A stretch of DNA of 64,000 nt from Mizuhopecten yessoensis. Lineage: Eukaryota. How positions within the stretch are numbered: the first letter of the stretch is position 1; the number at the start of each line of letters is the position of its first letter. The stretch lies in the NCBI RefSeq assembly GCF_002113885.1, contig NW_018406841.1:1-64000 (forward strand), written 5' to 3'. Under the pieces are notes generated by a model. It was given only the letters and a program-made list of their open reading frames with translations, had not been told where the DNA came from and did no database searches. Positions 258 to 63,857 of this stretch are shown here, piece after piece. The position numbers and the translations under genes are program-made.

Positions 258-3200
258 TTAATGGGTATCCCTGTTGAGGATGACATTCTTGAACACATTT
301 CTCTCGTCCTAATGTGGTCGATCCAGAATTGATGTTAGTGGTGGTTGTTGTCTCCCTTGAGTTAGCGGTTGTCTCCTTTGTNATAAGTGGCTGTGGTTGT
401 AGTGAATGGTTGAACAGTTGTGGTTGGTACGTACTCAGCGTTTGTAGGGGTGGTTGTAGTGATGGTCGTCGTCGTTGATTGATTAGTTTTCCCTTGTGCT
501 TCATTACAAGTCACAATAAGACCAAAGTAGGCAGACCCTATTGACACGTTAAGATATTGTCATCCAAAATTTAATGTTTATTGATCGTTTCATTACATCC
601 TCAATCAACTGTTTAACAATTTATATCATTAACAATATTATTAGTGTAGAATAAAAACACATATTGTAAGAAAGTCGAAATAGTTCAGTATTTGCTCGAA
701 ATGCTGAAAAGTTTTATTTTTAGTATGGTTTATGGCTACACATATGCTTATTTGTTTTGTCATCTGATAAAGTAAAGAGTACAAATGAAGATCATGAATG
801 CTTATTCATTTGACTGAGTTTTGTGCTTATGATATCATTATTTATGCCACAAAAACTGTTTTACTTAATAATTGGTAAATACCTTGTATTTCAGAAAGCA
901 TGTTATGCCAACATACTCAATATGTAATAGTAGCGTTATACCGAAACAATACATACCTTGTGAAGTGATGTATAGACAATGTCCTGATGTCCACGCTGTA
1001 CTGACGTCTTCCCTTGATTGCGTCAGTGTCAATGTGTCTGATGTCCCGAAATTATTTGTTGGATAATTAGAGACAGGGGCACAACCATTTTCATTAAACA
1101 GACTTGATTTGGTAGAAGAAATCCTAAGTATACTTCCACAGTTCTTCAATGGTGCTATCCTCGGATATTCCTGCACTACTACTGTTGTTGTATCTGTAGG
1201 TGACGCTGATCCGGTAAGTGTAACTGTACATGTGCAGCTGTATATATCCAAACCTCCCGTGTTCCAAGTGTCTATCACAACAGATGATTGTCGCAATGTT
1301 CCGCTCGTACACATCCGTTTTACTTTGATAAAAAAAGATAAAAAACAGAATACTTTTCATACGGCTGCAAACAGATGATTTCTTGTGGAATGGAATAAAT
1401 AAGTTGCGTCGATTTAGAAAATTATAATAGATACGCAGATATTAATTGTGAAAGTCTTTATAGTCGGTTGTTATTGTAGTGATTATTATTTTCGTCGAAG
1501 GTGGTCACCTTCAGCGTAACGCTCTCGCGAGAATTTCTGTTAAATTTCTGTTCAAATGAGTGCGCGACCTTCATATGTTCTAACACGATTTAAGGAAAAA
1601 CGTTAAATCGTATTCATTCGTGTTCAGATTCATGAATGTGAGATAGGGGCTTAACGCTCTCGCGAGGATTTCTGTTAAAAGTCGGTTCAATTATATACAT
1701 GAAAATTGTCTGTTTATCTATGTTTTATTTTACAACACTTTTTTTTCATTCCTCATTTAACTGTTTTGAACTTTCGTCGTGATATGACTTGAACGATTAT
1801 AGCTAAAAAGAAAACAACACTGAAAATTAAATTTGCAAGTAAGGAAAAATGGTTGACATATAGAACAAAAACTGCCAATTGTTTGTTCTTGAAAAATGTA
1901 AAGGACTGAAAAAAATAATAATTATTAAAACAAAACCCGTAGCATTTGACATTAATTTATACGCACTTCATGTAAACAAAATATGTAATGAAGAAAGTTT
2001 AAATTTATGTTTCATAGTAATATTACCATTTCAGATCTGCTGAACGACCTTCAAAGTGTTACGGGTAATGGATGCGTTTTAACACATATCTATCCTTTAT
2101 TGAGGTTCATACTGATCATACTCATTTGCTGTATTAGATGCACTCACCCGTAACGCGCAGTAACCATTAACGTTACTTACTATAGATACATATATGTATA
2201 TTCATTTTTCTGTCGACTAAGTCATACAATATCATCATTTTAATTTATCTATTTATTATATTGGTTTTGCCATTGTGTTATCGTTTTCAAAAATCAACAG
2301 AAATTAATCTTTGGTCTCCTGAATGACTGTACCGCCGAAGCCGTTGCGCTGGAACAATAAAACTTAACCAACGCACCAACACATTACAATAATGTGAAAT
2401 CAGTCCAAGTAAGTCAAAACAAACAGCCATGTATGATGACTCGTCAGAATGACGCTTCAAGGCCATGTCGGGATCTACATGTATTACAGTTAGATATAGC
2501 TTGTAATTGTCTTTCTTAAATGCAACTGATTTCATGCCATAGTGTAGAAAAAAGAAGAAACTTACCTTATACGATATTTACCTTTATTTTTTCGATTTAA
2601 TTTGCAGAATCTAGGGTAGTTTTCAGTTCCCAACTAAACAAAAAAAAACACATATATTTTGAAAATTGGTGTTGCTAACCCTTAATTTTAATAAGGTTTT
2701 GAGCCATCAGATCTGTACACAAAATGAACCTCGGCCGCTTGATGATTGCATTGACTTACAGAATCTACAGATAAGCCATGGGGAAAAGCTCAATGGTTGA
2801 AATTGAAACATTTTAGTAAAGCAGTTTTCTTTAGAAAATACGCAAAGAAATATGACCTAGGAGAGACGTTTTGGTGCCGTTTTCTATCTTTTAATGCGTT
2901 AGAGGAGAGTTTGTGACTTTTCACATACATTGTATGTAATTATAGCAGGAATAGCAGATATTTCCTGTACTATGTATTGATAATGATGTCCTCAATCTAT
3001 ACATATATGTGATTTAACAGTTACCAGTTGATTATGTCATAAATACTTGTACACAAAATGGAAATTCTTCTCAAGAATTTTAAAAGTTGCGAAATGTAAA
3101 AAAAAACCAGTGTCCCTTTTATAACTACGCAAGGACTTCATATTGGTTCCATTTTAACAAAGATCTTGATTGAAAATTTGATAAAGGATAATATGGAAAT

Positions 3201-4060
3201 AATTGTATACTAAAGTATGATATTTGTATCGACATCTATAATACAACATGACCTTACCGTAAATGAAGTTGTCCAAACCAGTCTGGTCAGTACATGCCGT
3301 TGTGTTGACACCTACAACAGATACTCTGTAATAATACATATAGCGAGACAATAATTGTAAGTCACGCTGGGGAAAATAACAGTAAAATTAACGGTACTGT
3401 TTTTAAACTGCAATGCATGTCTCTTTGAGTTTCAACTAAATATAATAATACGAATTCAAATATATTATACCAAAGTTTTACTTTATACAAAAATAATGTA
3501 CGTATCAAATGTGTCGCAACGTTTCAAGACCGACTGGTCCCTTTGTAAAGCTATGATCGAGTGAGCAATTTGTATTGTTTACCTTACAACGGTATGACGG
3601 AATTGTATATTTTTATGTCACTCGACCCGGGACATTTCGACCATCGATAGAGAGTGTAGGTTACTGGTAGTGTGTATATCTAGCCTCCTCTAACATCTAC
3701 GTACATATCTCAGGAATACGCCTAAACTTTAAACACAATAACACGTCCTCCTTGTACAATTACTTACAACTGATCAGTCAATGAGCAATGTACGCATGCA
3801 TATGTATATAAAACCATTAATGATATAATAATACAAATCCTTTTGAAGTCAGATATGTTACACCCCAATCAATGCTGTCCATATTCTATAGTATACATAC
3901 TTAATGAAGGATGTGTTACTCTTAAAACACGGATATCAATAAAAATACGTCTATTTATTTATTTTACTTCCTTGTTCGCATTACCTGTAATATAGGCGTG
4001 CACAATCACCAACGTATACGTATATCCCAGTACATTGAGTCTGTCTCGTCTACTGTCCAT
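258..4060 (-). CDS. Gene A (3'-partial): Cys-rich ectodomain/mucin-stalk receptor paralog. Exons 4060-3985 (signal peptide MDSRRDRLNVLGYTYTLVIVHAYIT), 3311-3258, 1322-957, 537-258; TM and tail exons expected left of the window
   Basis: Manual splicing gives GT/AG junctions, all phase 1, with exon lengths 76/54/366 that keep frame. Exon 3 has the family 6-Cys pattern (MC..VVIDT..CTC..CGSILR..C..HCL). Exon 4 is Thr-rich but changes frame at the n at 382 (assembly join). Confidence 0.8.
3462..3690 (-). mobile_element. Penelope terminal-repeat fragment, inverted homolog of 26680-26927
   Basis: Reverse-complement match by eye, e.g. gtgtcgcaacgtttcaagaccgac vs gtcggtcttgaaacgttgcgacac. Confidence 0.65.
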
Positions 4061-5211
4061 GCCTTCCCTCGCTGTTTAAAAAAGGGCAGGGAATTGTGAC
4101 ATGACGTTGGGTCAAAGCTTCAACTTCTGTGTTCAAAAGTCCAGCTGGTACATTGTATACATCAATACCGGCAAGAAGGAAGTAACCGTAGAACGTTCCT
4201 ATTGAATGTTATTGTAGACTAAATATAGCACTGGTGTATTCATCAAAACATGTTAAAGCTATTTGAACGCAGCGGTACATTGCCTTGCACCCAGTTAGTG
4301 TATAACGGAACAGAAATACAAATATGGCTGTTTGATCAAGTGTTCAAACCCTTATTTCATATGAACCTATCTTACATGTTTTGTCAACGAATAAAAATAT
4401 GGAGTTACTTAGTCATTCAAATATTTATGTATGTATATGCTATTAAAGAATTGATGTTGTCTCAGTGAAGAAATGAATATTAAGGTGTTATGTCTCAGTG
4501 AGATGCTAAAGAGTTCCGTGAAGCTTTGAGCAATCATTGCTGAAGATTATGACAACAACTTATTACTTATACCAATAAATGCATCTAGCAATGTAAATGT
4601 TTTGAAATTAAAAAACGTGGCACATTGCATGAATTATTGGTCTAAAAAAGGTTTCTATAAAGTCGTTTTAATAACAGAAGTTGATGAATTTTCATTTTGT
4701 AAGCATTTCTAGTGATTTCCATGTTAATTAACCATCTAAATCAAGAGGGATTCTAAATTGAGCAAAACGTAATCAATGGATAATTCAATTTTTCTTTCTT
4801 GTTATCTTGACTGAATGCTACAATAACATGACAGACATGGGATGTTTTGAATTGGCATACGACTTAGTAAAGATGACCTGAAGCTGCACCTGGGGACAAG
4901 CGCGTAATCAAGGGAGCTAGAATATCAGGGTCTGCTGACGAAACATGAAACACTCCATAATATAAGCAATGATAATTTTCTCCAACTTTTGCAAATATAA
5001 TACAAAGCACGGTCAGAACACGTTTCAACATAATTATGTTAAGTTATATCCTGGGATAGTTAGGAATTTGTATTTTATTGCATTTATTCTAATTCAGGGA
5101 AAGGATAAACTAGTCTTCTGTCATAGAACCTAGCATCAACAGATCTTAACATTGCATGTCGTTCGATCCGTGAATAATATACGCATTCTGATTTACGATA
5201 CATCACCATAC

Positions 5212-5978
5212 CGGGGCAGAAGTTGTCCAAACCAGTCCGGTCAGTACATGCCGTTGTGTTAACACTTATAATAGATATAGTCTTTTATAATATTCAATAA
5301 CAAAATGGTCAAGCCTGGAAATCAAATTAATGGTGTTCTTTACAAAACTGCAATGACAAAGACTATATCAGTTACAGAATTAAGTGATACCTAATTTACA
5401 CGAAAAAACTGAAGCGAACGACGGACACAAATAAGTCTATCATTCTGGACTATTGCGATCAATTACTCTTACACTCTTTATTCTTTTAGGCAGATCTGTA
5501 TTTTAACATTTTTAAATTGTTATATACTTAATGCTCTTATATAAAGCACACCCACATTTCAGTGTTCAATGGTGTATGTGATCTATTAGCGCAATTATGA
5601 TTGATCTATTGAAGAAATAATGCATTGATGAAGCAATGATAAAGGAAATGTATTTCGTCCTCTGTCCTGTTGTTATTACCAACAAACAATGAGCAAACGA
5701 GAAATAATGTATGACCTAAAACGTTATAATGTTATGATTATCATTCATTATTGAAACCAATAAATAACATCCTAATCGATACTGGGCAAACTTCGTTATA
5801 TACATACTGAATAATGTATATTTCGTCTTAGAACATCGTGGTAGGAAAATCAACGAGAAATATATCCCATGTATTTACCTCCCTATTCCTTGTTCGTGTT
5901 ACCTGTAATATAGGAGTACACAAACACCACCATATACATGTATCCCTGTAAGGTGACTTTCTCCTGTTGATCGATCAT
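5212..5978 (-). pseudogene. Orphan duplicate of gene A exon 1 (5978-5903, MIDQQEKVTLQGYMYMVVFVYSYIT, intact) and exon 2 (5265-5212, acceptor AG mutated to AA)
   Basis: Same 76-nt and 54-nt lengths and clear homology to 3985-4060 and 3258-3311. No exon 3 of its own. Confidence 0.7.
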
Positions 5979-9890: not shown

Positions 9891-12800
9891 TCAAGTACTC
9901 ATCGCCGTATTGACGTAGGTTTGTCGCGTGGACATTTCCTCGTACGTATTTGGGGGTTCAACACGTGACTGGTCAAGACTGTCATAGTGGACAGTGTCTT
10001 GTGAGGTCATGACATGGGATCCAGATTTCAGTTCATTCACCATCGTAAGACGCCTGCAAATATAGTTTCCGATGAAGTAGAATATCGGTGATGAAATATA
10101 ACTGTCATCTTCACTGGTTTACAATATACTATCAAATTAATGTCAGACATAATGATTGTTTTCAAAAGGATTTTCTAGTTCACAAACTCTATATTGTAAA
10201 GGACAAAATATAAGCTTTGGCATTTTTGATATTTATATTACAACTACCAGAACTATGCTATTTATTATTTGACTGAATAAATATATAATCCGCCTACATG
10301 TAAACAATGTCTTTCACTAGTGATGCACTAGTCTTTGTTCACCTCTACCTACCGTTTGTTCACCTCTACCTACCGTTTGTACAGAATCACATTAGCGACC
10401 GTGGCCACCGCTACCACCAGTAAGGTCACCACTATGGGGACAACGACACCGACTGAAAGGGATAACGAAGAATTAATGAGTTACGATTTAATCATAAATA
10501 TAACAGAATCGTCGATCAAGACGACCGGAGTTACATTCCCTGTTAAAGCAAGATATTATATTGAATAGTAGCTCATTTCACCTAGTTCCTTGTTCCTTCG
10601 GCCATTTATAAAGTTTTTAAAATAAATGACCTTCACCTATTTTCAAGGTCATGGGGGTCAAATATGTTAAAAACCTTTATACAACTTCTTCTTAATAACT
10701 AAGAGGCCTAGGGTTATGCTATTTGGCAACATGCTGGGATGAAGGGCTACCAAGTTTGTTAAATTTAATATGTGGTCGTTACACTTAGTTTCTTGTCTCA
10801 TGTCTAAACGAGCCAAACACACATTTACTTCCTGCCATCCGATACTTTAGTTTTTCTTGTTTTGTTTGTTTGTGTTTTACATCTTATCAATATAGCTATG
10901 GCAATTTGATGACGTGCCAGGGTTTGGTGGTGGAGGAAAGCCGGAGTACCCGGAGAAAAACCAACGACATGCGGCCATTTATAAATTTGGTTTGTTATTG
11001 GTATCAATTAATCATTTAATCAAAAAGACGTCAAAGAACACTCAATTTATGCTGGGAAAATTAGTTCAAAATATAGAAACACGTGAACGATGATATAAGT
11101 TATCTTCCTATTCACAATGCAAATAATATTAACTTATTTTTTTACTGAATAATTGATGATTTCTCTGTAAATCTCAACAACAAACATCATGTTTTATTGA
11201 TTAAAAAAAACTTCTCGAATTAAACTGTGTTTTAATTCTAATTTGGTTTTATAAAATATAATATAAAATATTTCATGACGTATATACTTACATAAGCGAT
11301 ATACTTGGTTCAAATCAGCCGTGACAGAGAAACGGGAACTGCTATTAAGACCACAAAAAGCCTTGCTTTTTAAAATATTAAAATGAAACAGAAACCCATT
11401 GGTTCCCCTTTGAATTTACAACATAATTTTTACAACGTATGTCGCATTGCATTAAATATCTGTGCTCGTCAAAATAAAGCAAAAAAACATGCCAAGTGCC
11501 AAGAAATATGTTTCATATTCAAACTTCTATTGTTTGTTAACATAGATATTTATCGTACACGGCGTTAATCACTGTTTCACCCGTTTCTATTTCTAATCAT
11601 TGTCTTGAGGATAGTAAGTATGCATTTTAGAAAGGTTATAAATCTTAATCAGTTAGTGTTTGTGTGTGACGTTTCTGTGTGACCAGTGAAGACAGCAAAA
11701 GTAGTAAATATATACGAGTTGCCACTATTCACCTGGATATTAAATTTATATCTGTTCTTGGTCATGGTACAAATATAAGCATATCAAAAATCCATTACAA
11801 TTGTGTCCATATGTCGCACAACATTTGTTTTCAAGCGTCATTTAACAAACAACAAACAATTATATTGGTACTGTACGTAGGGAAAACAAGAGATTTACTG
11901 TTCTTCTTTATTCGTGGAATTTAGTTTTAAGATATCTAACTTTATAAACAAGTAACACAAGACACATTCACGACAAACTAATGAAGGTTGTTTTCATCTG
12001 AATACGAATTTATGTTTTGTCATTTTGATTTTAACATTTAAACATTACTTCTAATGATATTACTGTTATTTCTGAACCGCATATTCTAAGTTATGGATTA
12101 TGATATGAACATTTTTTGTATTTCTTTTTGATTTACATGGGAAATAGGCAAAAACAAAATTATATCGGGATAGCTAAATATGTTCCCATATACATACCCA
12201 ACGGGATAGTAGGTTGGTCACATTTACAACATCCCGATTTGACGTCAACAGGGGTTGTTGTCATCGTTGTTGGTGGCGTCGTCATCGTTGTTGATGTCGT
12301 TGTTGTTGTTGTTGTTGTTGTTGTCATTACTGCTTCAGGAGTAGATGATGCAAGTAATGTATCTGGTGAATCACACGTAACCCTTAAGTTCACACCTGTG
12401 ACAAGATACCAATCCAAATACCAAATATATTTTGTTATACATTACAACCGTTTATTTTAATGAAATTTCGTCATAATTTATGCCATTAATTTGTAGATCT
12501 GACGTTTATTGATAAATAAGCCGTGTGGAGAGGACGTCAAATTAGCTTTTAACGTTGTTACTCTTTCAATTAAGATGTGTATCAATGTACTTGCAGTTTG
12601 AATGTGCAATATATATATTAATATTTTTTTTAGGAAAAATGAACACAAATGTTATTCTGAAACATTAACATCTGGTATTATTCTGGCCTTTGTGTAATTA
12701 AGAAGGCAATGTTTGTCAGAAAATGCAACATAAAAAAAACAAAGAAATATAAATTTACAGTTATTTTAATGTGTTATTATTTATCATACCCAAAAGTCGT

Positions 12801-15636
12801 ACAAACGTTTAAACGTTTCTAAAACATGTTTTTTAAGAACGTATATAAACGTGTATTTTAACTAATTTGATTTTTTGAAATCGTACCTACTAGTGGTTTA
12901 TATGCAACGCACATTGATGATTGATTCTACATTTTGTTAAATAATATTCTAAGAGGATTGATATTATTTCTTTTGATAATGATATGTTGTAAATAGGTGC
13001 ACAACTGTCGAAAAGCTAACATTATGATACATGCTACTAAGACACCTGTCAGCTTTAAATAGTTTGTTGACTGTTAGCAAGATTTTTAAATAGATATTTA
13101 TTATCGTAAATTTCCTAGCGTTGATGATGCTCAGACGAATCTGAATTATTAGATAATTGAATTTATTGTTTGTTGGAGGAGTTAAACAGGCGATAAGGTG
13201 TTTGTAAAACGTATTTCATGCAAATACAGAGTGAATGTAAATCTGTTTATAAGTAAGCCGTTATGTTACCTGATTTAATGAGTATGCAGTACCCGGACTG
13301 CAACTGGGTGTTGTTATTGACTTTCGACAAAGTTATATTTAACAGTTCATTGTTGGCAAAATTGCTAATGATATCACCACTAAGCCGTGTACATTGATAT
13401 TCAGTATAAGTATTAGTAGGATGTCTGTTAAATCTAAGGATGCTTCCACAATCAGACGCCGGCGCTGTTCCAGGATAAGGTCCAGTTTGTAAGTTGACAG
13501 GACCTGTATTAGTCCCACTTAGACTAACTGTACACCGACAACTGTCGTAGTCTAACACTCCTGTGTCGTTCGTATCTACCACCACACGTCCAGCTGTCAG
13601 TGATCCACTCCTACACATCGGCAACACTGTAAGATCAAATTCATTAAATCAAGTAAATGTTTAAACAGATGATGTTCGGTGAGAGCCTAAAGTATCGATA
13701 TCTTTCTACCTCTACCCAAACATAAAGTCTAGAATGAGAAGTTATCATTGTCCCACTCCTACATATCGATTCATTAGTGTTGTGTTGATTTATTGTTATT
13801 TTGTAATGTCAATCTCTTGTTTTCATTTTTCTTTTCAATTGAAGCAAATTACTTCAAGATCAGAAACAATAATCTTACTATATCAACTATATACCATGTC
13901 AATGTCAATTGCCTAATACTGTTATTAACTAGAATTGTAAAGCTTTTGAAGTTGAATCTCCAATCTGTTTTAAAGATGAAAATTTCTGACAACATTTATA
14001 CAATATGGGTCGAATTTTGCGCACTATGAGGAAATCAGATTTTTCCTTTTTTTTAAGATTTACTCTTTAAATACATCTAAATATTCTGATTCAATTTATA
14101 AATCTATCGTTACCTTCTTTTGCATATTTCAACAAAAATATTAATTTATTTGTACGTACATAGAATACTACAACATCCGCTATACATACCGTTAGTAAAT
14201 CCATCTGAATTAGCTTTATCAGCACATATGGTAGCATCGATGCCTGCAATCAATATCTATCATTACTAACAATCACAATGTCCATTGTGTCCTGCTTTTT
14301 TCAAACAGAATAATGATTAAGAAAATAGAAAAGTGAGCATTAGATATAGTCACATCCTCGATACTTCAGAGGTTATACTCACACCAATTTTACTGTTATG
14401 CGATCGACAGAAACTTTTGATGTACATCTATAGATCAGACAAGTCTTCTTGTATAATCCACAAGGTGATGCACACTTAGCCTTCGATTTTGCTACGACAT
14501 ATTCTAGAAGTGTAGAGAGCGAAAGTGAGCGAAACCCCTGGACATCGAGGATATCATAGCCATTTATGCATATAGAAAGTCAAAATGCATATCAAACTGT
14601 AAGTACATCGCAAATCCTTAACACTTTTATATTTTTATCTTTTGGCACCGACACATGACTGTCCTAGGCTAAACTAAACCTTAGCGTGTGATTGATTAAA
14701 ATATTTAAACGTTTTGAAAAGATTCATGTAGCACAACCAATAAGTGTTTATATGCGTCGTTTCGATGACTAGTATGGTATGTACTCTATCACCTCCATCA
14801 GACAAATGACCAGCGAAGTGTATGTACATAAAGGTGTAAGATTGTACGCGTTGTCCCCGCAAATCGATGTCGATTCTGCTACGCTGTAAGCGTATGTACA
14901 ATAAGTTGTTATATATGTACCGAAATGACTCGTGTCACATAAAAACACTTATTGTCTATGCTACAATAATCTTTTTATAATCCATACTTAAACCAACTTG
15001 AAGAAAATACTTAGAAAAATGCTAAAACGTGCATCTTATCACATATTTCAAATGGATGTGATGCACAATACATGACATGGTTACACTCTGTTCTAGTACT
15101 TCTTCAACTTCTGTTTTATTCTGTTCATCTCAAACCTATCAATACATTTTGTAGTATCCCCATTACATCAGCAAATATATAATATCAAACTACACAGACT
15201 TGAAGGTGCTTATGTGCGAATGTTTCCCACTTTAAAGCGAAAAGGATGCCTACATGCATATAGTCTAAATGTTTGTACAGATTTAACCCCAAAATTATAA
15301 AGAAAAAAGCCAAACCGAGAAAAACTTACAAAGTATATATGAAACATAGCAACTTATATGACTGCTATATCGATAATCTGACAGAGACTGATACGAGTAT
15401 AGCCTGCAGAATAATGATATTTAATGCCAGCTGTTGTATCCCAACACCTTTTTCGTAGACACCAGTTAAAGTTACTTTACCTATACTGCTATCAAGCTAA
15501 ATAAACACAGCAAATACATTTTTACGGAGTGATCACCTTAACAAGAATTTACTTCCGCATTGGGTTTACCTGTGATGATATAGTCCACCAGTATTACAAA
15601 AGCCATATATCTCATCCGGTTGATTCTGCCCCTCAT
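9891..15636 (-). CDS. Gene B (complete, 305 aa): type I membrane receptor with Cys-rich domain, poly-Thr stalk, TM and Tyr-motif tail. Exons 15636-15570, 14243-14190, 13626-13270, 12395-12198, 10452-10374, 10053-9891
   Basis: All six exons have canonical GT/AG and join into one 918-nt open frame. Signal MRGRINRMRYMAFVILVDYIIT; TM VGVVVPIVVTLLVVAVATVANVILY followed by KRR; tail RLTMVNELKSGSHVMTSQDTVHYDSLDQSRVEPPNTYEEMSTRQTYVNTAMST*. Confidence 0.88.
10860..10978 (-). mobile_element. SINE 3' fragment with V-like core
   Basis: ggaggaaagccggagtacccggagaaaaacc preceded by a (tttg)n tail. Confidence 0.55.
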
Positions 15637-38534: not shown

Positions 38535-38665
38535 GCCCGCACGTTAGCGCACGTGGGCTTTAATGTGGAAGGAAACCTGGAAGGAGTACATGAAGAAAAC
38601 CCACGTGGTTTGGCAGGTGACCCCATATCTTTTAATGTCCGATCAGGGAATCGAACGCAGACCCC
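38535..38665 (-). mobile_element. Degenerate copy of the same SINE in gene D intron 4
   Basis: Reverse complement of the core and B-box (gggaatcgaac). The homologous copy in gene F is at 57170-57295. Confidence 0.65.
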
Positions 38666-43377: not shown

Positions 43378-43680
43378 TAACAAATACAAAGAGTTTCTTA
43401 GCACCTCGATAGCGCTTTCACCTCTAACAAATACAAAGAGTTTCTTAGCACCTCGATAGCGCTTTCACCTCTTTAGAGGTTAATCAAGGGAACTGTTTAT
43501 AGATATAAAACAAATACAAAGGGTGTCTTAGCACTTCAATAGCGCTTTCAACTCTTTAGATGTTTATCTTTTTACCGTCACATGGAAATTTAAAACTATT
43601 TATCGCTATATATATATATAACAAATACAAAGAGTGTCTTAGCACCTCCCTATCGCTTTCACCTCTTTAGAGGTATCATA
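43378..43680 (-). repeat. Four tandem degenerate copies of the same hammerhead-like repeat within a (TA)n tract
   Basis: Reverse complement reads cctctaaagaggtgaaagcgctatcgaggtgctaagaaactc. Absent in paralogous introns (~24290, ~30545). Confidence 0.7.
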
Positions 43681-49100: not shown

Positions 49101-50994
49101 ATCCTACGTATACGCGTCATTTCATTCATACAGTGCAGAGTGAATGTTGAGCTGGTTTTGGTCTGTTTATAACACAGCTTTTATAAAATTCGAATTGATC
49201 TTTAGACAGGAACGAAGGATAGTACCTTCCATATAGCTGAATAGCTACTTTAGATGAAATCGTTAAACACAATTTGTTTTGTTTCAATTTAAGGAAATTA
49301 TACATGAAATCGCGAAAACACATAAAACACGGAACGAAATACACCCAATTTATAGAATATTATAAAATAGCCTCTACTTGATTAGTGTCCTATCCAAATT
49401 AACATTAAATTGCATTATCTAGGAATTATTTTTCGTTGATCAATCTCGGCTACATGCACCTCGCGGATTTACAAACGCTATTTTTAAGCTAAACGTAATG
49501 TAGATCAGGATAATATGCTACAATGATAAATCTTCATATGTTGTACGCGATCTCATAGTAACACATTTATTTCAGACTAACAAGAGCATTCGTGAAACAC
49601 CGCCAGAGGTATCTCTTGTTTACAATCAAAGCATAACTTTCCCTTTTACTTTCATGTATTTATATATTTAAATAAAAGTAAGGTAATAGGTTTACATAAA
49701 TTAACACCCTTGATACAACCAATACAGACAAACATATTTATATTTCTATGTACAATTGTTAAATGCATAATTACACAAGAAATACCTCTGTTAATAAATT
49801 TCAAGTATGACATACTTGGTATGTAAGTACTGATAGTCATTAAGTTCTCGTTGCTGTGCATGTATCTGTCTTTGTATCATTTCAGCTACGGTCATTATCG
49901 CAATAGCTGCAGGGGGCGTGGTCTTCCTTATAATCTGCATTGTCATTGCGGTCATGTGTTCAAGGTTTGTATTTCTAATACGGTAAATAGCTATAGGTTA
50001 ACAGGAACGGAATGGTATTAGTTTGTTTAAATTGTTATTAAACAAAGTCATCACATGCCATCAATAAAAAATCACATATATGTAAATATAACATTTAATT
50101 AACAAACTGTTTCTATGTTTTAAATGATAAAAGATAATAAGTGGACTTTTCAGGTTTTTAATACATGTAGATACATATTCTCAATGTGATCAAATCATTT
50201 TGACATTATTGTCCACAATAGTGAAAGATGTTGGTTGCAGGGCCTAGGCTCAATGACTTAGGGGATAGTATGGAACAGTAATCTGTGTTTTATGTCATGT
50301 TATGTAGAATAAAATAATTTAAATTTGGAATATGCTTTGATATAAACATCATTCTTCATAACTCTTTGTGACTAGAATGTTAATATAATTAAATTTAATA
50401 ATTGAAAATTTTTGCAAATGCATTTTAAAAGATTTTGGATTTCTCAAGTCTAATTCAATCACCAATCACATCGATATGTGCATTATATTTTTCAGAACAA
50501 AAAGAAAATCAAATGAACACAGGAAAACTGGAACTGCTGTAGCCCATAATGTCTTGTATGAAGCAACAAGAGCACATTCACCGGATGCAGCAACCAATCA
50601 TGTGGTGACCCCTAGCAGCGATATATACGCACAGGTCGAAAGGCATTCGAAGGTCGAAACAACGAATTCAAAAGAGCAGTCTCATGAGCCGGAACAGGAA
50701 ATAGGTCATGTGGCGACACCTAGTGGTGATATTTATGCACAGGTCGAAAAGCATTGGAAGGTCGAAACAGCGGTTTCTAAAAAGCGGTCTCATGAGCCGG
50801 AACAGGAAATAGAACATGTGACGACACCTGGTGGTGATATGTATGCACAAATCGAAAAGGATTCGAAGGTCAAAACAACGAAATCAACCAATCAGTCCCA
50901 TGAACCAGAAGAGGAAGTAGAAATTGTGATGACACCTAGAGGTGATATTTATTCACAAGATGGGAATAAGTCAGATGCTAGTGTGTATTTCTAA
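46102..50994 (+). CDS. Gene E (complete, ~494 aa): inverted receptor paralog with C/D-type ectodomain, long mucin stalk, distinct TM and repeated DIYAQV tail. Exons 46102-46153, 46955-47002, 47266-47637, 48545-48979, 49886-49964, 50496-50994
   Basis: The spliced frame is open (1485 nt). Signal MIVWNLVLVLILMSLFK; 6-Cys exon homologous to C/D; TM TVIIAIAAGGVVFLIICIVIAVMC followed by SRTKRK. The exon-4 donor position is uncertain and exon 2 has a NAGNAG acceptor (46952/46955). Confidence 0.85.
50599..50960 (+). repeat. 108-bp (36-aa) coding tandem repeat, 3 full units plus 1 partial, in the gene E tail
   Basis: Unit starts at 50599, 50707, 50815, 50923. Confidence 0.9.
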
Positions 50995-51717: not shown

Positions 51718-51968
51718 CTTGTATCTTGTATGTTGTATGTTGTATGTTGTATGTTGTATGTTGTATCTTGTATGTTGTATTTTGTATCTTGTATGTTGTA
51801 TGTTGTATGTTGAATGTTGTATCTTGTATGTTGTATTTTGTATCTTGTATGTTGTATCATGTATGTTGTATCTTGTATGTTGTATGTTGTATGTTGTATC
51901 TTGTATGTTGTATGTTGTATGTTGTACCTTGTATATTGTATGTTGTATCTTGTATCTTGTATTTTGTA
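51718..51968. repeat. 7-bp microsatellite (TTGTATG/TTGTATC)n
   Basis: Directly visible; it explains the spurious Cys/Tyr ORFs at 51705-52079. Confidence 0.95.
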
Positions 51969-54549
51969 TATATATATATTAAGGCCTTGTCCCAATGCAC
52001 TCATGCTTTGAACTTCTTTATAGTATTGATTTTTGTTTCTATTAGTACAATTATTAATATCTTATTATCCGTACAATAATAAGAATGATCGGACGAACTA
52101 TTTTGTGATTAGAATGAAAATATTTTGATTATCTTAAGTTAGTGCTTATGTGTTGTATTAAAATATTCTTGAACCTATATATGTACATTGTACTTCTTAG
52201 TTTTTAGTGATGAAAATATCATGTAATATGTTCATAATATTGCCTACCTGTTAATATATGTTAATGATGACCTTGTATTACACATATAGAAATGTCAAAA
52301 TGAAAATAAAAACCCTGATTTGTTTTAATGTCAAATTGTTTCTGACACCTAATACCTAATAATATTTAAAAACAATACGCATGCAAAACAAGTGAAACAT
52401 TCAGCCCTTCGTTCTTCACATCTCCTGCATTTATTACTATCATTATGTCCATTTCAATACAAGAGACGGGAAGTGGGCGACAATTTTATGAAAGTGCTAA
52501 TTTAAATTTCAAATTAATTATTTAAATATAGCGCAAATTTCGGGTATAGTTTCCTTTAAAATTATTCGTTTTGGAACGTTTATAGTGTTCTGTAACGTAT
52601 GAAAATCGATAAAGTTGGTCCAGTCTAATTTGCTTACATATTAGATTTAATTTGCCTCAAGTAATATTAAGTTCAGTTAACCAGGTAAACTGTGATATTC
52701 GCATTTACAGACTTACTAATAAATACGATTTTTTTTTTTTATATGGGATATGACACAATTGCTCTAACCCATAAACCCGTATCAGCCCGCAAAACCCGTG
52801 TCACACCCCTTTTGGAACACTTCTAATTTTTCCCATCTACCACCAACAACGTCGTTGGGAAGCCTTGTTTACCAACAGTTAAACAATAACTGATGCTGAA
52901 AAACGGCGACAAATTGGGGAGCGAGCATTGGAGTCTCTCTGCCAATAGGATTCTTGAGTTAGAATATCTGATTGAGCAACAGAACACTAAAACCATTGTG
53001 CCGTCAGAGCTGTCTGTCGTCATCGGTACGATTCACGATGTGGCGGCAGAGGGAGCAGAGCCTAAAGCTCTCATCGTTACAGCTGCAGCAGTCGACACCT
53101 GCGGCTTTGTTTCAAGCATGAGGAACAAGAATACAGTCAGAATGACCGAGTCTAACGTGAGAAAATTTAAGGCATTTCCTTTGGTAACCAATGACACGTG
53201 GTATCCAGAAGCAATTCCAAAACAGGAATTAAATAATACTTGCAAGGTTTATCGTTTTTCAATGATTCAAAAGAAAAATAGATCATAAGATAGTAGATTT
53301 ATCCGTATTTTATTAGTAAGTATGAAATAAACAGAATAAACATGCCTTTTACCATATCACACCGAGTTTCAACCGGACACCGATATCAGTCCTCGTATCA
53401 TTTTCTTGATATTCATTTTCACAAAATGCAGACTAAACTACTTGATTTTTGTGCACAATCTGAATTACGGTTGGAGTTTAAGATTAAATTAGTTTTAATA
53501 AAGCAGATTCGTTTCATGTATGGCAATCCTCGATACTCCATGGGTTACGCTCACCCCTGGAATATGTCCTGACACAATCTAAGGGTCAATGTGCGCCACC
53601 TTGTGGACGAAACATATTCAAGGGGTGCAGAGAGCGAAAGTAAAAAATGTCATATAAAAATAACCGGGGGAAAAACCTGGAATCAATGTTGGCATTGAGT
53701 CTGTAAATGAAAATAATTGTTGTTTTTTAATCTGTTTGAGTAATCACAAAAAATAGTTTCTTACAAAAAACAATCTGTTGTTTCCCTAAATAAACATATT
53801 CATCCCCGAACTCTAAACTCAGACTATGCATTGTGTATATGAGAGTCACATTTGAGTCATAACGTCATTATCCAATTAAAAAGCGACTTTTTGTCCTTTA
53901 GAAATGTATTGATAACGTTGTTGATAACGACGATCAGTGAAAAGTTGTTTGATGTGTGCTTAACTGTATTTATAATACTAGTAGACGATGTCTTATTAGT
54001 AAGTAATATTAAGCTCACGAGTTCACATTACAAAGATATGTAATATGTATCTCATCAAATTGTTCAACTTTGGGGACGACATCTAATATTTGTATTGCAC
54101 TATATCTGCATCTGCAGATGCAACTATACTATCTATATGATACACTCATTGTGATTAGTGTTTTTTTTAAATTTATAGCAAATATTACCATTTAATTTTA
54201 AAATTCACAATTTTCATTCTTGATTACGAATATACATAAAATTCCACCGGATTATTTGCTACCCCAGATGTGTGTACTATGTATCACGTATTTTGTGACA
54301 ATATCACTTTTTCTTTTTAGCTTCGAAACAACTAAGTAGCGTTTCTTGTATGTTTATATAACACTGTTCCTTGGCAAATACACGTAAAAACAATAATATA
54401 GTGTTATATTTACATTTGCGCTGCAACCCACTATATAAAGATTACCAGCAGTAATCCATTTCATTTGGGTATGAAAGCAAAAACTCTTGTGACGTAGCAC
54501 GTGGTTTACATATCTCAAATATAGCAGTTGGCAGCTTACAGCCTCACGG

Positions 54550-56410: not shown

Positions 56411-59400
56411 TTATGATTCCATCGCTGTATTGACGAACATCTGTCCAGTAGAGGTGTCGGCGTACAGGTTGGGAGGTTCCACCCGGGAGAGATCTAGACT
56501 GTCATAATGGACAGGGTTTGGTGACGTCATGACGGCTTCAGTATACTCTGGCTGTTTCACGAGTGCAAGTCTTCTGCAAATATGATTTTCAAGCTTATTC
56601 CGGTTCTTGATATCGTAATGTTTTACCTCGGTGGGTAAAAAGTCTTCAAAAGGCAATGTAAATATCAAAATGTATATAGGAATTTGATCTCAAATCAGTT
56701 CAAATACAGAACTTGATAATGAAAATGATACGAAATTATTTAATTATTTTCGTCAATGTGTAGTTAATTTCAAAACAGATACCATTGAGAAAAAGTGTCA
56801 TAAATAGATCAAGTATCCATTCTAAATGGTGCTATGAAGGATAGCCTGTTAACGTCAAAGGAAATATGTGATAAGTAACATAATTCTGTACCATGCTACT
56901 TACTTTCTATAAAGGATAACATGGACTACCACGGTTACAGTAACCAGTAGTGAGGTAACTACTAGAGGGACGACTACAGCACCTGGAAAATATACATATT
57001 GTTGTTATCTGTAACACAAATATTGGCCAAATCTGTTGTATAAAAAGAATACCACCTGAACTATGAGTTAAATCGACATGTTTAATCATTGTCTACAAAA
57101 AAATGTTTTTTGTTTATTTAAAAAGTAACATGAAAGAAGTTATTTTGACTTGTATTGGCCACTTTTGTTTGCCCGCACATTAGCGCACCAGGTTCTTAAT
57201 GTAAACGGAAACCGGAGTACAAGGAGAAAACCCACGTGTTTGGGCAGGTGACCCCATACCTTTTCACGTCTGATCAGGGAATCTAACGCGGACCCTCTTT
57301 TCGACGGCTACTGATATTATTTATTAGAATATCATAAACCATACATAATGTTATATTTCTCGCCTAAAGCTGTTAATTTTCTCGCATCACAGACGAGAGA
57401 ATTATCCAAGTATTTGTTTGCAGAGAACAATATATAAAGAGACACAATGTGTTACAACGGAAAAAGCAGATTAATATTTCCCTGCTGTATCTCCAAGAGA
57501 ATAGAAGGCATATATATATAAACAAACCTCTAATTATATAGTGTCAAAAGTCCACTTGAAAAAATANCTTGGGGCCTGATGGTTAGATGTTTAGGTGGCA
57601 GAAGTTTCAAAAGTTTTATGTGTGGCTTGAGAAATATATATAGATGTGAAATGTATAAAAGAAAAAAAAATTAAGTCTGTTTTTGACTGGGGGAGTTTAT
57701 TAAGTGTGTAATTTGTTGTAAATGTTGGTCAATTTTTGGTGTCGAATTCAATACAAAATGGCGGCCCCCATATAAAAAAAGTTCAAATAGGTAGATTTTT
57801 AAAACTTCTTTTTTTACAGGTGTGTGAAATGACATTCTTCAAAATGATGTCAGGTGAACCAGTGTGGATAACTCCATTTAACCAGGACAGTGGTAAACGT
57901 TAACACTATCGTCTATGGAAAATCATTTGGTTCCGCGGTCCCTACACCCATCTTTAAAGCCCAAAAACAAAAGATTCAAATATCCCTACCTCCCTACCGT
58001 GACGTAACCCATATCTCGATGACAGAGCCACAGAGTGATCTCCCTTCCTCTTCCTTTTATGACGCCTGCTGCCTGCTGACGGCCTGGAGCTTGCACCATA
58101 TCAAAACTTTGTTTTGTCGGTTTGGTTTGAGTGTCAACTCAATTTATTGCGCAGAGTGTGTGCTTTATATCCATATGCCCTTATTACTATAATCATTTGT
58201 TGTTGAAAATTATTTTTGTGCCTTTTACGGCCGGTTATTTTACTCGACGTGTGCCGGTGGTGTGCCACGCGGTCCGCCATTATTGTGTGAAATTTTCCGA
58301 CCTCTGTTTATTTCAGTGACGGTTGTTTGTTTCGGCAAACGTTATTTATTTTAATCGTTTTCTGATTTATATTACGGGTGAAATTCTTTCTACGTTGCGT
58401 ACCTTGTACTATCGTATTTTATTATTTTTTCTCGTGTTTATCTGCTTGTAAACTTTGTTTGACGACAGACTTTCTTTCGGGATTGTCTGTGTCTACCAGG
58501 ATTAGTGACGCGCAGCTCACTAATCCCGGCATCAATACTGGTCAAGCTAACCTTCCCGGTCAGTTACCCGGACCCGGTCCTATTAGGTCCGGCCCGGAGT
58601 TTCATTCGACCGGGAACCTTGGGGGTTCCCCCCAGGTGTTGGGTTTGCTGGACATGGGGCCGGGTTCCGGCCTCCGTTTTCCCCTGGCTTAGGGTATACG
58701 GGTGCCTGCGGGCAACCATCCTTGGGCCACCCTAACCAGCCTGCGGATGGTTATGGGTTGCGGCAGCATCCCGGCAGTTATGGGCTTAGCCCGTACATGT
58801 CCGGCTTTCCACCTGGAGGGAGTGGCGGTCCATCTTCGCCCTTTGGGCAAGATGGCCAGCCCCAGTCTCAAGCAGGCCAGTTTGGCCAGTTCTGGGGTCA
58901 CTCCCAACCCGCGGGACCTTTCCCTTATCCTCCGGGATATGGGTTTAGCCCCATGGCTTTTCAGTCATGGAATCCTTGGGGTTTGGTTTCTCCCTCACGG
59001 AGACGTGTTAGCAGTTTTGTTGAACCCCCCCCCCCCCCCCCCAAATGGTCTGCTACTTCGGGGGCCTTATCGGCCGGTCCTAAGAAGGTGTGTCGGACCT
59101 TCAGGACTTCTGCCTCTCAGGCAGACTGGTTGGTCTCTGGGTCCAAGGGTAGGGTTTTGGCTACTAAGATTAAACCTACAGCCACGGTCGTTAGGCGCAC
59201 TGCACCTAAACGCCGTTATGGGAAGCCTTCTCTCTGGCTGGCCCATTTCCTCCGCCCGAGGCTTTTGGTCTGGCTGGTGTGGAGGCTATGGCAGAGGACG
59301 ATGATGTTGTTCATTTTTCTCCTGGTTGCTCGGATATAGACACTGGTCTTTCCGAGTCGTCTGTTGACGGTCCTCAGGAGGGCTTGCCCTCTGAGGAGGA

Positions 59401-62400
59401 TGTCCAGGATGAGGGTGACCCTGAGGATGCTGAGGTTTAGGCCCAGCATGTGTTGTCCGGTATGCGGGGCCTTAGGGCCGACGTTTCCCGGATTGGGGAG
59501 GAGGTTTGCCCACCACCTTCGGCGTCATCTGTCCCCGAGTCCACCACCCTATTGGGTTCTTAGGTGGCTCCTTGGGTGTCCGCTCGGTCGGACCGCTCTC
59601 TGCCAGAAGGCATTATTGTGTCTTCATCTCTGGCCACCGCTCAGTCTCGGGTTTTAGAGAAGAATTCTTCTTCAACCCGTAGTCCTGGGTATGCTGGGTT
59701 GCAGCTCAGTGTTGGCGATTTGTCGGAGGTGCACGCCACTGACTATGCCACACATGATGGCCTGCTTGATCCTCAACCAGCTAAGCTGAAATCGAGGGAA
59801 CTTGCAGCCTGGCCCGGTAAATCGGTGGACCAAGTGGTGTTCTGTCCCAAAGAACACCACAAAATGGAGATGCGTCTCTCCATCCAGATGCTGTCTTATA
59901 TAGACTACCTGACGGTTTGTCTATATAGGGTATCCGACTTGCCTGAGGGTCGGCCAACATCCAGGACAGAGTGGCCTCTGCCCTGAACGGGGCATTGAGA
60001 GCGCTGGCAGCTTTACAGGTGTCATCGCTCGTCAATGTCTTGTTGGCTAGGCGGTTTTCAGTTTTGAAAAAACGTCCAGTCGATGAGCCTTACCGCTCCA
60101 GATTGTTGACTGCCCCCTTCTCAGGGTCCACTCTTTTGGAAGGGGCCTTCCTTCTGTTCAGAAGGATTTGAAGGAGGACTCGGTCGCCTCTGCACTTCTG
60201 GTGAAGAGGATTCAGGCTGAGAAGGCCAGTACCTCGCAGGGGTCAGCGCCTCCTAAGAAGAAGGCTAAACCTTCGGCTTCGCAGTCCTCTGCGCAGCCCA
60301 AGTATAAGCCTCCCTTCAAGGGCAACAAATGGAAGGGTAAGAAGGGTAAGAACCCTCCTGGGGGTAAGAAGAAGGGTTCCTGACTCTCTTCTTCCCTCCT
60401 TGGTCGTGTCAGACGACGAGTTTGGCCGGGAGGACTGCAGTCCTCTCGGCTCAAGCTTAGGTCCTTCTCCCGCAGGATTAGACTTCGGGTCAGCAGACGG
60501 TTCTCTTGCCTGGCAAGGTCTCGATCTGCCTCGACCAGATCTTCCTGTGGGGGGTCGTATTTCCGCTTTCCTTCCAGAGTGGAAGGAAATTACGAAGATG
60601 CATGGGCCTTGTCTGTGGTCAAGGAGGGGTTAGGGGTTAGGCATCCGCTAGTGCGGTATCCGCGTCAGAGCCAATCTTTTTTCCTCCACCGGGGGATCCG
60701 GAAAAGGCTTTGGCTTTCCAGGAGAAAGTAAGGACCATGCTTACCAAGGGCGCGGTCGAGGAGGTTCCTATGTCGGTATGCACTCCCGGGTTCTACTCCA
60801 GAATGTTTCTGGTTCGGAAGAAGTCCGGGTCGTGGCGTCCCATCATAGATCTAAGTGCCTTCAACAAGCACGTAGATTCTCCTCACTTCAAGATGGAGAC
60901 TCCTCGGGGTATTATCGCCTCCGTGAGAGAGGGAATGTGGGCGACTTCAGTAGATCTAAAGGACGCCTACTGCCACTTCCCCATCAAAAACTCGGCACGG
61001 AAGTACCTCCGTTTTACTTGCAACGGAAAGGTCTTCCATTTCCGGGCCATGCCGTTCGGGCTCACAACTGCACCTTTGGTTTTCACTAAGCTGCTGCAGG
61101 TGGTCGTGGGATTCCTGCACTCTCGAGGAATAGATGTTCACATCTATTTCGACGACTCCCTCATGCTCCACCTAGTGAGAGAGTCTCCGGTTCAGGTCAC
61201 CCGGTTGGTTCTGAAACTCTTACTCAAGGTCGGCTTCATTCCTTCCAGAGAAAAGTCGGAGGTTTCCCCATCTCAGGATTTTGTTTTCCTGGGGAACCGT
61301 TTCAATACGGTTCAGGGCATCGCCCTTCCACCGATGGAGAAGTTCGAGAAGGCAAGGGCTTTTGCTCTGACCTGCATCGGCCGGTCTCAAGTCCAGGTAC
61401 GTTGGTTTCTCAGTTTTCTCAACGCCCTGGCCGATGTGGTCCCCTTAGGGAGACTTCACATCAGGCCTCTCCAGATGTTTCTCCTTGTCAACTGGGTCCC
61501 TTCTTCAAGGGATTGGGAAGCCTGGGTTCCTCTGAACAAGTCGGTCAAGAAGTTCGCACGCTGGTGGACTCATCAGGACAATGTGCTCCGAGGGGTTCCT
61601 TTGTCCAAGCCGGTTCCCACTATGACCCTGTACACGGAAATGCAGTTGACAATTTGCGTCAAGCATCTACCAGGCAGGTTGAATGTTCTGGCGGATACTC
61701 TTTCCAGACGCCGCCAGCCGGTGTTGACAGAGTGGCAACTGAATCCCTCGATTTTCGAGGGAATTTATCAGGTGTGTGACAGGCCTCACATAGACCTGTT
61801 CGCCACTTCACTGAACAATCAGTTGCCAACGTTTGTCTCTCCGGTTCCAGATCCAAGGGCTTGGGCCGTGGACGCTCTGTCTCTGGATTGGGAGGGAATG
61901 CATGCATATGCATTCCCGCCCTTCAACCTGGTGGGCAGGGTGCTGCAGAAGTTTCGGGGGCATCAGTGTTCACTCCTCCTGATAGCGCCCCTGTTGCCGA
62001 GGCAGCCTTGGTTTCCGGAGCTTTTGTCACTTCTGGTGGAAGAGCCCCTGGCTCTTCCTTCCAGAGCGAACCTCCTTCGCCAGCCTCGGTCCAGGCAATG
62101 CACTCTCGTCCGGAGATCCTCCACCGTCACGCTTGGAAGCTATCTCAGGAGGCCTCGCTCAGGCGGGCTTTTCTAGGGACGTGTCAGATCGCATCGCTCG
62201 ATCAATTAGGTCTTCCTCATCTGCCGTCTACCAGTCCCGATGGAAGATATACTGTGATTGGTGTGTCGGCAGGAAGGTTGATCCATCAAGGCTACTGTCC
62301 AGGTGATTGCGGACTTCCTTCTTTGGCTGTTTAGGGACCGCTGTCTTGCCCCTGGCACTATCGCTGGTTATCGCACGGCCATTGCTAGTGTTCATTCTGT

Positions 62401-63857
62401 TCATGGTAGGTCGGAGGTAGGCTCGTCCTCCTCTCCTTCTGCCTTGATTAGGGGGTTTGGGTTGGACAGGCCTAGGTGCTCGAATCGTTGATGCGAGCAC
62501 CTTATGATCCTTTAGCGTCTGCCTCCTCGCCCAATCCTATTAAGATTCCGTCTTTGACTGCCTTCGTTGGGTCTGAGGAACGGGATAGGTTGCTCTGTTC
62601 CTGTCGGCCGCTTATGTTTTACCTCGATAAAACCGGGGGGGGGGGGGGGGGCGTTTCCTAGATCTCGTCTGTTTTTGCCCATTAGGCTGGGTCAGCAGAA
62701 TATCTCCTCTAAGTCAGTGTCTAGATGGATCTGTCGGGTCATCAAGTACGGTTACGACCACTCGGGTGATCAGGTTCGGGCGTTGTATAAGGTGAGAGCT
62801 CATGAGATCAGGGCTCTTGATGCGTCATGGGCCCTCCTCAATGGGCCCCCCTTTCAGGAGGTCATGTCCGCGGCTTTCTGGCGCGGACAGACTACCTTCA
62901 CGGATTTTTATCTCCGGTCCTTGGCTTCTCATTCTGATGGATTGTATTCCCTTGGGCCGGTGGTGGTTGCACAGTCTGTGGCTGTTCCTCCACAGTAATT
63001 CAGTGATTTTAAACAGTATGCTATCAGGCACCACGATGGTACACCTGCTCGATTCACGGGGAGGTTTTCCATTTATTTATTTTTTCAATTACTTTCGGGG
63101 CTTATTTAGGGGGGTTCCTTGAACCTTTTCCCTACCTTGAGCATGTCTCTAGTTTGTTCCGTCAGCCTGGTCTGCCTGGATTCGTAGCCTCCACTACGGT
63201 AAGACGAATTCGCATACTAAAGTTATGGTAATTATTACTGAAATTAAATTGAGGTTTTAGAAGTAAAACCAAATTTCATGATGTAATACCTACCATAACT
63301 TTATTGAGTCCATCCCTGTATTCCTCCCCTTGCCTCCTCATCCCGGCTGCCTTTAGGCTCCATAAAAGGGGAAGGGAGATCACTCCGTGGCTCTGTCATC
63401 GAGATATGGGTTACCTCACGGTAGGGAGGTAGGGATATTTGAATATTTTGTTTTTGGGCTACAAAGATGGGTGTAGGTATTGTATATGCATACTAAAGTT
63501 ATGGTAAGTATTACATCATGAAAATTGGTTTTACTTCAAAAACCTCAAGTTTATTTAATAGCTATGAATTGAAATACATACTTAATGGATAACATTGCTG
63601 TAAATCGTTTTGTTGAGCGCACTTTTGTCCTAATGTTGTCGATCCAGAATTAGTGCTGTTGTATGTGGTTGCATCCCTTGACTGAGTGGTTGTCATCCTT
63701 GACTGGGTGGTTATCTCTCTTGACTGAGTGATTGTCTCCCTTGACGGCGTGGCTGTCTCTTTAGACTGAGTGGCTGTTGTCCTAGATTGACTGGCAGTCG
63801 TTGTCTCCCTTGGACTGGAAATTGAGACACATTTTGTGGACAACGAAGACCCCGGAC
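56411..63857 (-). CDS. Gene F (5'-partial): close paralog of gene D. Stalk exon 63857-63582, TM exon 56982-56904, tail exon 56573-56411; a DIRS element lies in the intron
   Basis: Exon lengths 276/79/163 are identical to gene D, frames are open and splice sites canonical. Upstream exons lie beyond the window. Confidence 0.8.
57170..57295 (-). mobile_element. Degenerate SINE copy in gene F intron (shared with gene D)
   Basis: ggaaaccggagtacaaggagaaaacccacgtg...ggcaggtgacccc. Confidence 0.65.
58505..60383 (+). pseudogene. DIRS ORF1 (gag-like), fragmented by frameshifts; Pro/Gly/Gln-rich N-part and Lys-rich C-terminus
   Basis: Overlapping broken ORFs upstream of RT, ending in KYKPPFKGNKWKGKKGK. 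Assigned by position, not by motif. Confidence 0.55.
60710..62176 (+). CDS. DIRS ORF2: reverse transcriptase + truncated RNase H + Dam-like DNA adenine methyltransferase domain
   Basis: RT motifs FYSRMFLVRKK, WRPIIDL, DLKDAY, MPFGLTTAP, YFDD. RNase H tail HLPGRLNVLADTLSR, with the N-terminal DAS/GWG part apparently deleted after LYTE. Methyltransferase motifs IDLFAT..N..LP.F and YAFPPF. Confidence 0.92.
   Translation: MAFQEKVRTMLTKGAVEEVPMSVCTPGFYSRMFLVRKKSGSWRPIIDLSAFNKHVDSPHFKMETPRGIIASVREGMWATSVDLKDAYCHFPIKNSARKYLRFTCNGKVFHFRAMPFGLTTAPLVFTKLLQVVVGFLHSRGIDVHIYFDDSLMLHLVRESPVQVTRLVLKLLLKVGFIPSREKSEVSPSQDFVFLGNRFNTVQGIALPPMEKFEKARAFALTCIGRSQVQVRWFLSFLNALADVVPLGRLHIRPLQMFLLVNWVPSSRDWEAWVPLNKSVKKFARWWTHQDNVLRGVPLSKPVPTMTLYTEMQLTICVKHLPGRLNVLADTLSRRRQPVLTEWQLNPSIFEGIYQVCDRPHIDLFATSLNNQLPTFVSPVPDPRAWAVDALSLDWEGMHAYAFPPFNLVGRVLQKFRGHQCSLLLIAPLLPRQPWFPELLSLLVEEPLALPSRANLLRQPRSRQCTLVRRSSTVTLGSYLRRPRSGGLF
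62200..62998 (+). pseudogene. DIRS ORF3 tyrosine recombinase remnants (internally deleted, frameshifted)
   Basis: N-terminal ADFLLWLF..LAPGTIAGYRTAI and the C-terminal catalytic region RAHEIRA...AAFWRGQTTFTDFYLR (HxxR, W, Y). Confidence 0.85.

Follow-up and report, generated by a model that had tools for sequence, protein, structure and literature searches.

Vertebrate paired receptors, among them PIR-A/B, Ly49, NKG2/KLRC, Siglec-5/14 and Siglec-11/16, CEACAM1/3, and CD300A/C, carry similar heads on two classes of tail, lie in clusters with pseudogenes and positive selection, and show within-species homogenisation confined to the ligand-binding exon, a pattern described in mammalian leukocyte receptors as 'merohomogenization' (PMC3210942). 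We describe here a bivalve family of single-pass receptor genes at the start of a scaffold of the Yesso scallop, Mizuhopecten yessoensis (bases 1-64000 of contig NEDP02003514.1; this whole 64,000-base stretch is the window referred to below), and we propose, with a probability of about 0.55, that it works in the manner of the vertebrate paired receptors. The scallop family differs from its vertebrate counterparts in that the heads are predicted to be CUB-like, rather than immunoglobulin (Ig) or C-type lectin domains, with no homology between the two, and in that one of the two tails (T1) bears its own motif resembling an ITAM (the immunoreceptor tyrosine-based activation motif), with a 10-11 residue spacer and without a charged transmembrane (TM) residue for an adaptor.

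Among invertebrates, the heads of Hydractinia Alr proteins have V-/I-set Ig and Fn3-like folds, and Alr1 and Alr2 are allelically hypervariable. The scallop genes instead encode a single CUB-like head raised on a mucin stalk, and the head of gene E showed no allelic variation. The two systems are alike in being clustered single-pass genes with one domain per exon, pseudogenes, and tails bearing ITAMs or immunoreceptor tyrosine-based inhibition motifs (ITIMs) (bioRxiv 10.1101/2022.03.04.482883). The fester/FcoR receptors of Botryllus likewise form an invertebrate multigene group, whose tails carry ITIMs and hemITAMs (bioRxiv 10.1101/2024.10.16.618699), and within molluscs the GRC and PTC2 clusters of Biomphalaria encode uncharacterised single-pass proteins that are proposed parasite-recognition receptors (PMC4361660, PMC7494358). 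Divergence among alleles of PTC2 is 3-85%, they contain no known domain, and they lack homologs beyond the gastropods; the report describing them mentions neither CUB nor ITIM (PMC7494358). Scallop diversity, in contrast, is found among paralogs, and it is not known to be linked to resistance. In vertebrates, homogenised heads are a known feature of the paired receptors of leukocytes, and our literature searches found no mollusc paired-receptor case with homogenised heads and no paper naming the loci described here, which are already annotated as uncharacterised RefSeq loci.

Similar heads on two classes of tail

Each gene encodes a signal peptide, an eight-cysteine CUB-like head encoded mainly by exon 3, a serine/threonine-rich stalk, one TM helix, and a T1 or T2 tail. 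Manual exon mapping and profile scans of the window define genes A to F and several orphan leaders, and confirm a family of type I membrane proteins encoded by paralogous genes. The scans recover five copies of exon 3 (A, B, C, D in two frames, and E), seven of exon 2, three T1 TM/tail sets (B, D, and F), and one T2 set (E). A sequence-only reading of this DNA had proposed at least six paralogs on a six-exon plan; the family and the plan hold, but only B and E have all six exons intact within the window, D being a pseudogene, C lacking a TM exon, and A and F running off the edges. The intron phases it gave (1,1,1,1,2) are borne out in B and E, with AG/GT ends, its eight cysteines are present in the intact genes in a 1+6+1 split, and the TM/tail exons of B, D, and F measure 79/163 nt as it stated (the TM exon of E is likewise 79 nt). 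Its description of a clustered receptor family, in which heads vary, tails carry tyrosine motifs, and copies turn over by birth and death, is also supported. Exon-3 identities are 38% (A-B), 34% (A-E), and 24% (B-E).

In B, D, F, and their relatives, the T1 tail comprises about 55 residues, with a juxtamembrane cysteine and a polar residue in the TM helix, and contains VHYDSL, a second tyrosine 14 residues further on (YEEM in B), and YxN, the last YxN being altered to F in the tail of gene F. The pattern YxxL-x10/11-Yxx[M/I/L] is present in five of the scanned T1 tails. The T2 tail (E, its paralog E2 just outside the window, and relatives) is 90-190 residues long, with a glycine-rich TM helix and D[ILVM]YA[QV][VI] repeats, which in gene E are 36-residue repeats bearing D[IM]YAQ[VI]. 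T2 proteins of the A, B, and G types add terminal ITIM-consensus motifs, LVYAE[LV] and VIYSEV-like. The tyrosine motifs that the sequence-only reading saw in the tails are there, and the ITIM consensus is found in the A-, B-, and G-type T2 proteins, but not in canonical form in E, and no scanned tail has a canonical ITAM with x6-9 spacing (consensus as used for Hydractinia).

Relatives are present in Pecten, Ylistrum, and Argopecten, as well as on three or more further scaffolds of M. yessoensis, and more distant ones in Saccostrea and Mytilus; conservation of the subtypes and tails extends over four scallop genera. Each of the head subtypes (A, B, C/E, and G) is found on both tail classes. 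The head tree, which was built without three long-branch rows, requires nine changes of tail label, and the approximately unbiased test rejects a T1 clade (p = 1.4e-5). The T1 and T2 partner heads of subtypes A, B, and G are 74-89% identical within species (Pecten B 84%, Ylistrum A 85%, M. yessoensis A 79-82%, G 74%), as opposed to 55-67% between species, and the head of gene B in the window is 89% identical to that of a T2 protein on another scaffold, as opposed to 56% to the Pecten B-type T1 head. TM and tail regions are 22-36% identical across classes versus 61-72% within a class between species. At the DNA level, the similarity of the Pecten B partners is confined to exon 3 (91% over 387 nt), and the two genes lie 2.2 Mb apart on one chromosome; the Ylistrum A partners are 93% identical in exon 3 and about 80% identical in two short adjacent pieces, and orthologous copies of exon 3 are 69-73% identical between species. 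Pecten and Ylistrum have undergone head-restricted (exon-3) homogenisation across tail classes, as in vertebrate paired receptors, and the comparisons indicate that within species exon-3-limited exchange keeps partner heads alike while the tails follow the species.

Selection and copy turnover

Within the set C, E, F, and E2, the ratio of nonsynonymous to synonymous rates (dN/dS) in exon 3 is 0.68-1.28 at 59-67% amino-acid identity; it is 0.17-0.55 in exon 3 between species and 0.16-0.31 in the T1 tail between diverged copies. E and E2 have diverged to a dS of 0.18 in exon 3 and 0.02 in the tail. Comparison of codon models M1a and M2a on the heads of C, E, F, and E2 gives a likelihood-ratio test (LRT) statistic of 18.2 (p = 1e-4), with omega2 of about 6 on 16% of sites; the outcome is similar with other species added, and none of 47 null simulations, half of which included a recombination mimic, reached the observed LRT. 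These fits indicate that the C/E/F-type heads of the window are under positive selection, in agreement with the diversifying selection that the sequence-only reading had expected among paralogous heads, and the dN/dS values indicate purifying selection on the T1 tails. Both D-E and F-E2 are arranged head to head, which argues for tandem duplication of one head-to-head T1-T2 pair, and the same layout is found in Ylistrum.

The predicted fold of the head

Pfam scans of the window exons and of 30 aligned heads gave no significant head match, including to PF00431 (CUB) and PF02408 (nematode CUB-like), the sole weak one being CUB_CDCP1_1 (E 0.021). Sequence searches of the PDB with the heads gave no match, and Foldseek against the PDB returned nothing at E <= 0.001, although CUB proteins appeared among its weak matches. 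AlphaFold predicts the heads of F and B to be beta-sandwiches (predicted local confidence, pLDDT, 91 and 89.5), and when these models are compared with 48,161 solved chains their top matches are the Kremen CUB domain (Z 8.4 and 8.2) and spermadhesin (Z 8.1 and 8.0), superposing with a root-mean-square deviation of 2.8-3.7 Å over 105-119 residues. Neuropilin, MASP, C1s, TSG-6, PCPE-1, and cubilin follow, with many further CUB domains in the top 20, and the language-model neighbours of the heads are CUB clusters together with unnamed mollusc and rotifer clusters. No Ig domain is among the leading structural matches, and there is no significant Ig match in Pfam. On these models we regard the head as CUB-like by fold, but neither a Pfam CUB member nor Ig; the earlier guess of a divergent CUB domain is favoured, and the Ig-like option offered beside it is not. 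The jelly-roll is predicted to match over about 105 residues from the first exon-3 cysteine, and the six exon-3 cysteines are conserved across the family. The scallop heads have eight cysteines, however, where CUB domains have four (with a pair of canonical disulfides and, for many, an acidic Ca2+ site), and are mounted singly on a stalk with signalling tails. CUB-like genes in C. elegans are clustered and p38-regulated (PMC1635533).

The automatic names attached to family members (endochitinase A-like, DAN4-like, mucin-5AC-like, and Ig-like) are not accepted; their most probable source is the low-complexity stalk or the automatic naming itself. P0014 (3108 residues) is a repeat protein and a false positive.

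A paired-receptor model and its alternatives

In the model we favour, the CUB-like head, raised on an O-glycosylated stalk, would bind an external, fast-changing ligand such as a microbe, a parasite, or the mimic that one of these makes of a self ligand. Src-family phosphorylation of the tail tyrosines would then allow T1 to recruit Syk/Shark-type kinases and GRB2, and T2 to recruit SHP/Csk-type SH2 proteins, so that a single ligand could yield opposed or graded signals. C, D, E, F, and E2 would represent a species-specific expansion of the head-to-head pair, in which the heads diverge under positive selection and copies may die, as D has, or lose the membrane anchor, as in C. We hold more tentatively, and as clearly less likely than not, the stronger proposal that scallops independently evolved true activating/inhibitory paired receptors on an undescribed bivalve CUB-like domain, with exon-limited conversion across megabases to maintain them and pathogens as the driving force, so that the logic known from vertebrates arose convergently in molluscs. 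If function follows anatomy, these genes would supply clonable candidates for the on/off receptors of bivalve immunity, of use in breeding for disease resistance, would define a CUB-like family overlooked by Pfam, and would test whether tyrosine-motif signal balancing evolved convergently.

Several considerations weigh against the paired-receptor model. The immune function, the ligand, and the signal sign are inferred. The signs of T1 and T2 are suggested by motifs: VHYDSL, the first T1 tyrosine motif, also fits the ITIM consensus used for Hydractinia, and with the lack of a canonical ITAM this means that T1 as activating and T2 as inhibitory is a reading we infer; in addition, the second half of the ITAM-like motif is degenerate in the D and F tails, and the motif scan found no canonical ITIM in the E and E2 tails. 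Structural Z scores of about 8 are borderline, with GOLD and other jelly-rolls scoring 7.4-7.7. The selection test draws on four sequences and on code that we wrote ourselves, its statistic may be inflated by recombination or by multi-base changes, and several homolog models are automatic annotations unchecked against RNA. Within the window, F is only 62-65% identical to its E and E2 partner heads, and no significant recent conversion tract was found among the heads of C, D, E, F, and E2, so that this subgroup has the look of a subfamily that is expanding and diverging, not of a closely matched pair.

The alternative that survives best, although we consider it unlikely, is that these are endogenous cell-cell, adhesion, or developmental receptors comparable to Kremen, neuropilin, and CDCP1, in which a single self ligand would be channelled by the two tails into separate pathways, and exchange of heads would keep partners matched either to a host ligand that evolves along with them or, as heterodimers, to one another. 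Such a role fits with the best structural matches being non-immune CUB proteins, with the retention of subtypes and tails in four scallop genera and of distant relatives in oyster and mussel, and with gene E being commonly transcribed and allelically stable, but it does not readily account for positive selection and copy turnover among paralogous heads, for the pseudogenes and orphan leaders, or for exon-limited homogenisation across tail classes, which is the signature reported for paired receptors driven by pathogens or the major histocompatibility complex. Neutral exon shuffling with relaxed birth-and-death, in which chance recombination mixes heads and tails without paired function, would accommodate the many dead or partial copies, the mean dN/dS near 1 among window paralogs, and the conflicting informative sites. 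We consider it improbable because exchange ends at the exon-3 borders between Pecten genes megabases apart and recurs in several species and subtypes, the site model prefers positive selection to neutrality, and the tails are under purifying selection.

Transcription and variation of gene E

The region of gene E is represented in 18 runs from seven studies, classed as RNA by guess and with tissues coded rather than named, which contain 27-43% of its sampled words, approximately its exonic share. All five E introns are joined at their GT..AG ends in contigs of runs X2 and X5, so that the splice junctions, for which the sequence-only reading had suggested an RNA check, are observed. Loose ends in run X1 match exon 3 of C and of F exactly, showing that C and F are transcribed too, and letters of C, E, F, and E2 are found together in that run.

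The breadth of E transcription bears on the still less probable explanation that these are gamete-recognition or reproductive surface proteins, whose CUB-fold heads diverge rapidly between species. Spermadhesin is a top structural match (Z 8.0-8.1), the heads are 55-67% identical between species with more conserved tails, and low allelic variation within the species fits such a role; however, E transcripts in so many runs and studies, albeit of coded tissues, argue against a rare gonad-only transcript, and two signalling tails per head would be unexpected.

Exon 3 of E has no differing letters across three transcript sets (X1, X2, and X5, from three studies), although the runs were picked for holding the reference, contigs lose rare variants, and alleles more than 10% divergent would be missed. 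Apparent polymorphisms in the E tail and 3' untranslated region (UTR) are rejected as alleles, 36 of the 40 listed read differences being letters of paralog E2. The diversity observed here lies between paralogs. Hypervariable alleles of the kind found in allorecognition systems, which the sequence-only reading had offered as a candidate, are not supported, and the low polymorphism that it had named, together with purifying selection across the ectodomain, as counting against its reading is found in E exon 3, with the caveats just given. Scallops live singly and do not fuse with one another. A complex for allorecognition or histocompatibility, in which hypervariable alleles tell individuals apart, like Hydractinia Alr or Botryllus fuhc/fester, would be similar in architecture, pseudogenes, and ITAM/ITIM-like tails, but with an invariant E exon 3 and tail variants attributable to E2 it is the least probable explanation we considered.

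Two observations concern alternative forms of these transcripts. Run X1 joins E exon 1 toward exon 3 (46153-47266) with exon 2 unmatched, exon 2 and with it the first cysteine are missing from a RefSeq isoform of F (P0004), and the E exon-2 acceptor is a tandem NAGNAG site; exon-2 variation in E and F transcripts is possible. E intron 4 (48929-49915) is covered at low depth by X1 and X2 contigs, which may reflect a retained intron or unspliced RNA, and would yield a TM-less form if translated.

Gene inventory and other features of the window

Table 1. Family genes and orphan leaders in the window; exons are listed in the order of transcription.
Feature	Extent	Strand	Exons	Description
Gene A	258-4060	-	3985-4060, 3258-3311, 957-1322, 258-537	exons 1-4
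Second A-type leader pair	5212-5978	-	5903-5978, 5212-5265	exons 1 and 2
Gene B	9891-15636	-	15570-15636, 14190-14243, 13270-13626, 12198-12395, 10374-10452, 9891-10053	intact, T1 tail; LOC110452986, XP_021357449 (RefSeq)
Gene C	19002-24446	-	24401-24446 (broken exon 1), 23590-23637, 21491-21865 (intact exon 3), 19002-19172	LOC110452967; broken own leader; exon-3 letters seen in run X1
Orphan A-type exon 1	27210-27285	-	27210-27285	inside duplicated A promoter block
Orphan C-type leader pair	29662-30731	-	30680-30731, 29662-29709	exons 1 and 2
Gene D	37912-43816	-	43765-43816, 42467-42514, 40642-41009, 38977-39252, 38271-38349, 37912-38074	pseudogene, T1 tail; head-to-head with E
Gene E	46102-50994	+	46102-46153, about 46952/46955-47002, 47266-47637, 48545-48958, 49886-49964, 50496-50994	intact, T2 tail; KP79_PYT06804; five junctions seen in runs X2 and X5
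Gene F	56411-63857	-	63582-63857, 56904-56982, 56411-56573	exons 4-6 only in window; T1 tail; LOC110452985; head-to-head with paralog E2

The exon-4 donor of E is placed at 48958 by transcript contigs. In gene D, exon 1 contains a stop, and the frameshifted 368-nt exon 3 goes out of frame at the fifth cysteine. The TM and tail of gene A would lie past the scaffold start, and its exon 4 shifts frame beside a single N at 382; exons 1-3 of F are beyond base 64000. The A promoter block is duplicated, 3691-4899 resembling 26927-28086. Profile scans of the window found no TM exon of either class for gene C, and hydrophobic stretches near 17.4-17.8 kb and 6.7-7.0 kb were rejected as TM/tail exons, neither class scoring there. 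The RefSeq model of C joins the orphan A-type leader to C exon 2 and ends without a TM helix, and its product is possibly a soluble decoy.

No exon overlaps the assembly gap at 31731-32173, which is located upstream of the 30.7-kb orphan leader, so no gene model or frame is affected. The sequences flanking it (31364-31730 and 32175-32545) are direct copies with 98% identity, which makes continuity through the gap uncertain and suggests unmerged contig ends or haplotypes; similar sequence is present in F intron 2. Intron 4 of F contains a GC-rich DIRS-like retrotransposon (57941-63548) with inverted terminal repeats (57941-58048 and 63370-63477), an internal segment (63212-63303) complementary to 63488-63548, and a reverse transcriptase open reading frame at 60641-62173 (Pfam RVT_1, E 1e-18). 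A three-copy repeat (33123-33194, 38529-38668, and 57165-57295) contains a tRNA-like match (Rfam RF00005, 30.6 bits) and is probably a tRNA-derived short interspersed element. A 69/138-bp minisatellite occupies part of C intron 3 (19290-19709), and a 7-bp tandem array lies downstream of E (51719-51969). In both Ylistrum and Argopecten, the E-type gene is followed by a gene for an amino-acid transporter (PF01490; L001 25447-29599 and L003 19507-25590), which serves as a synteny marker of the cluster.

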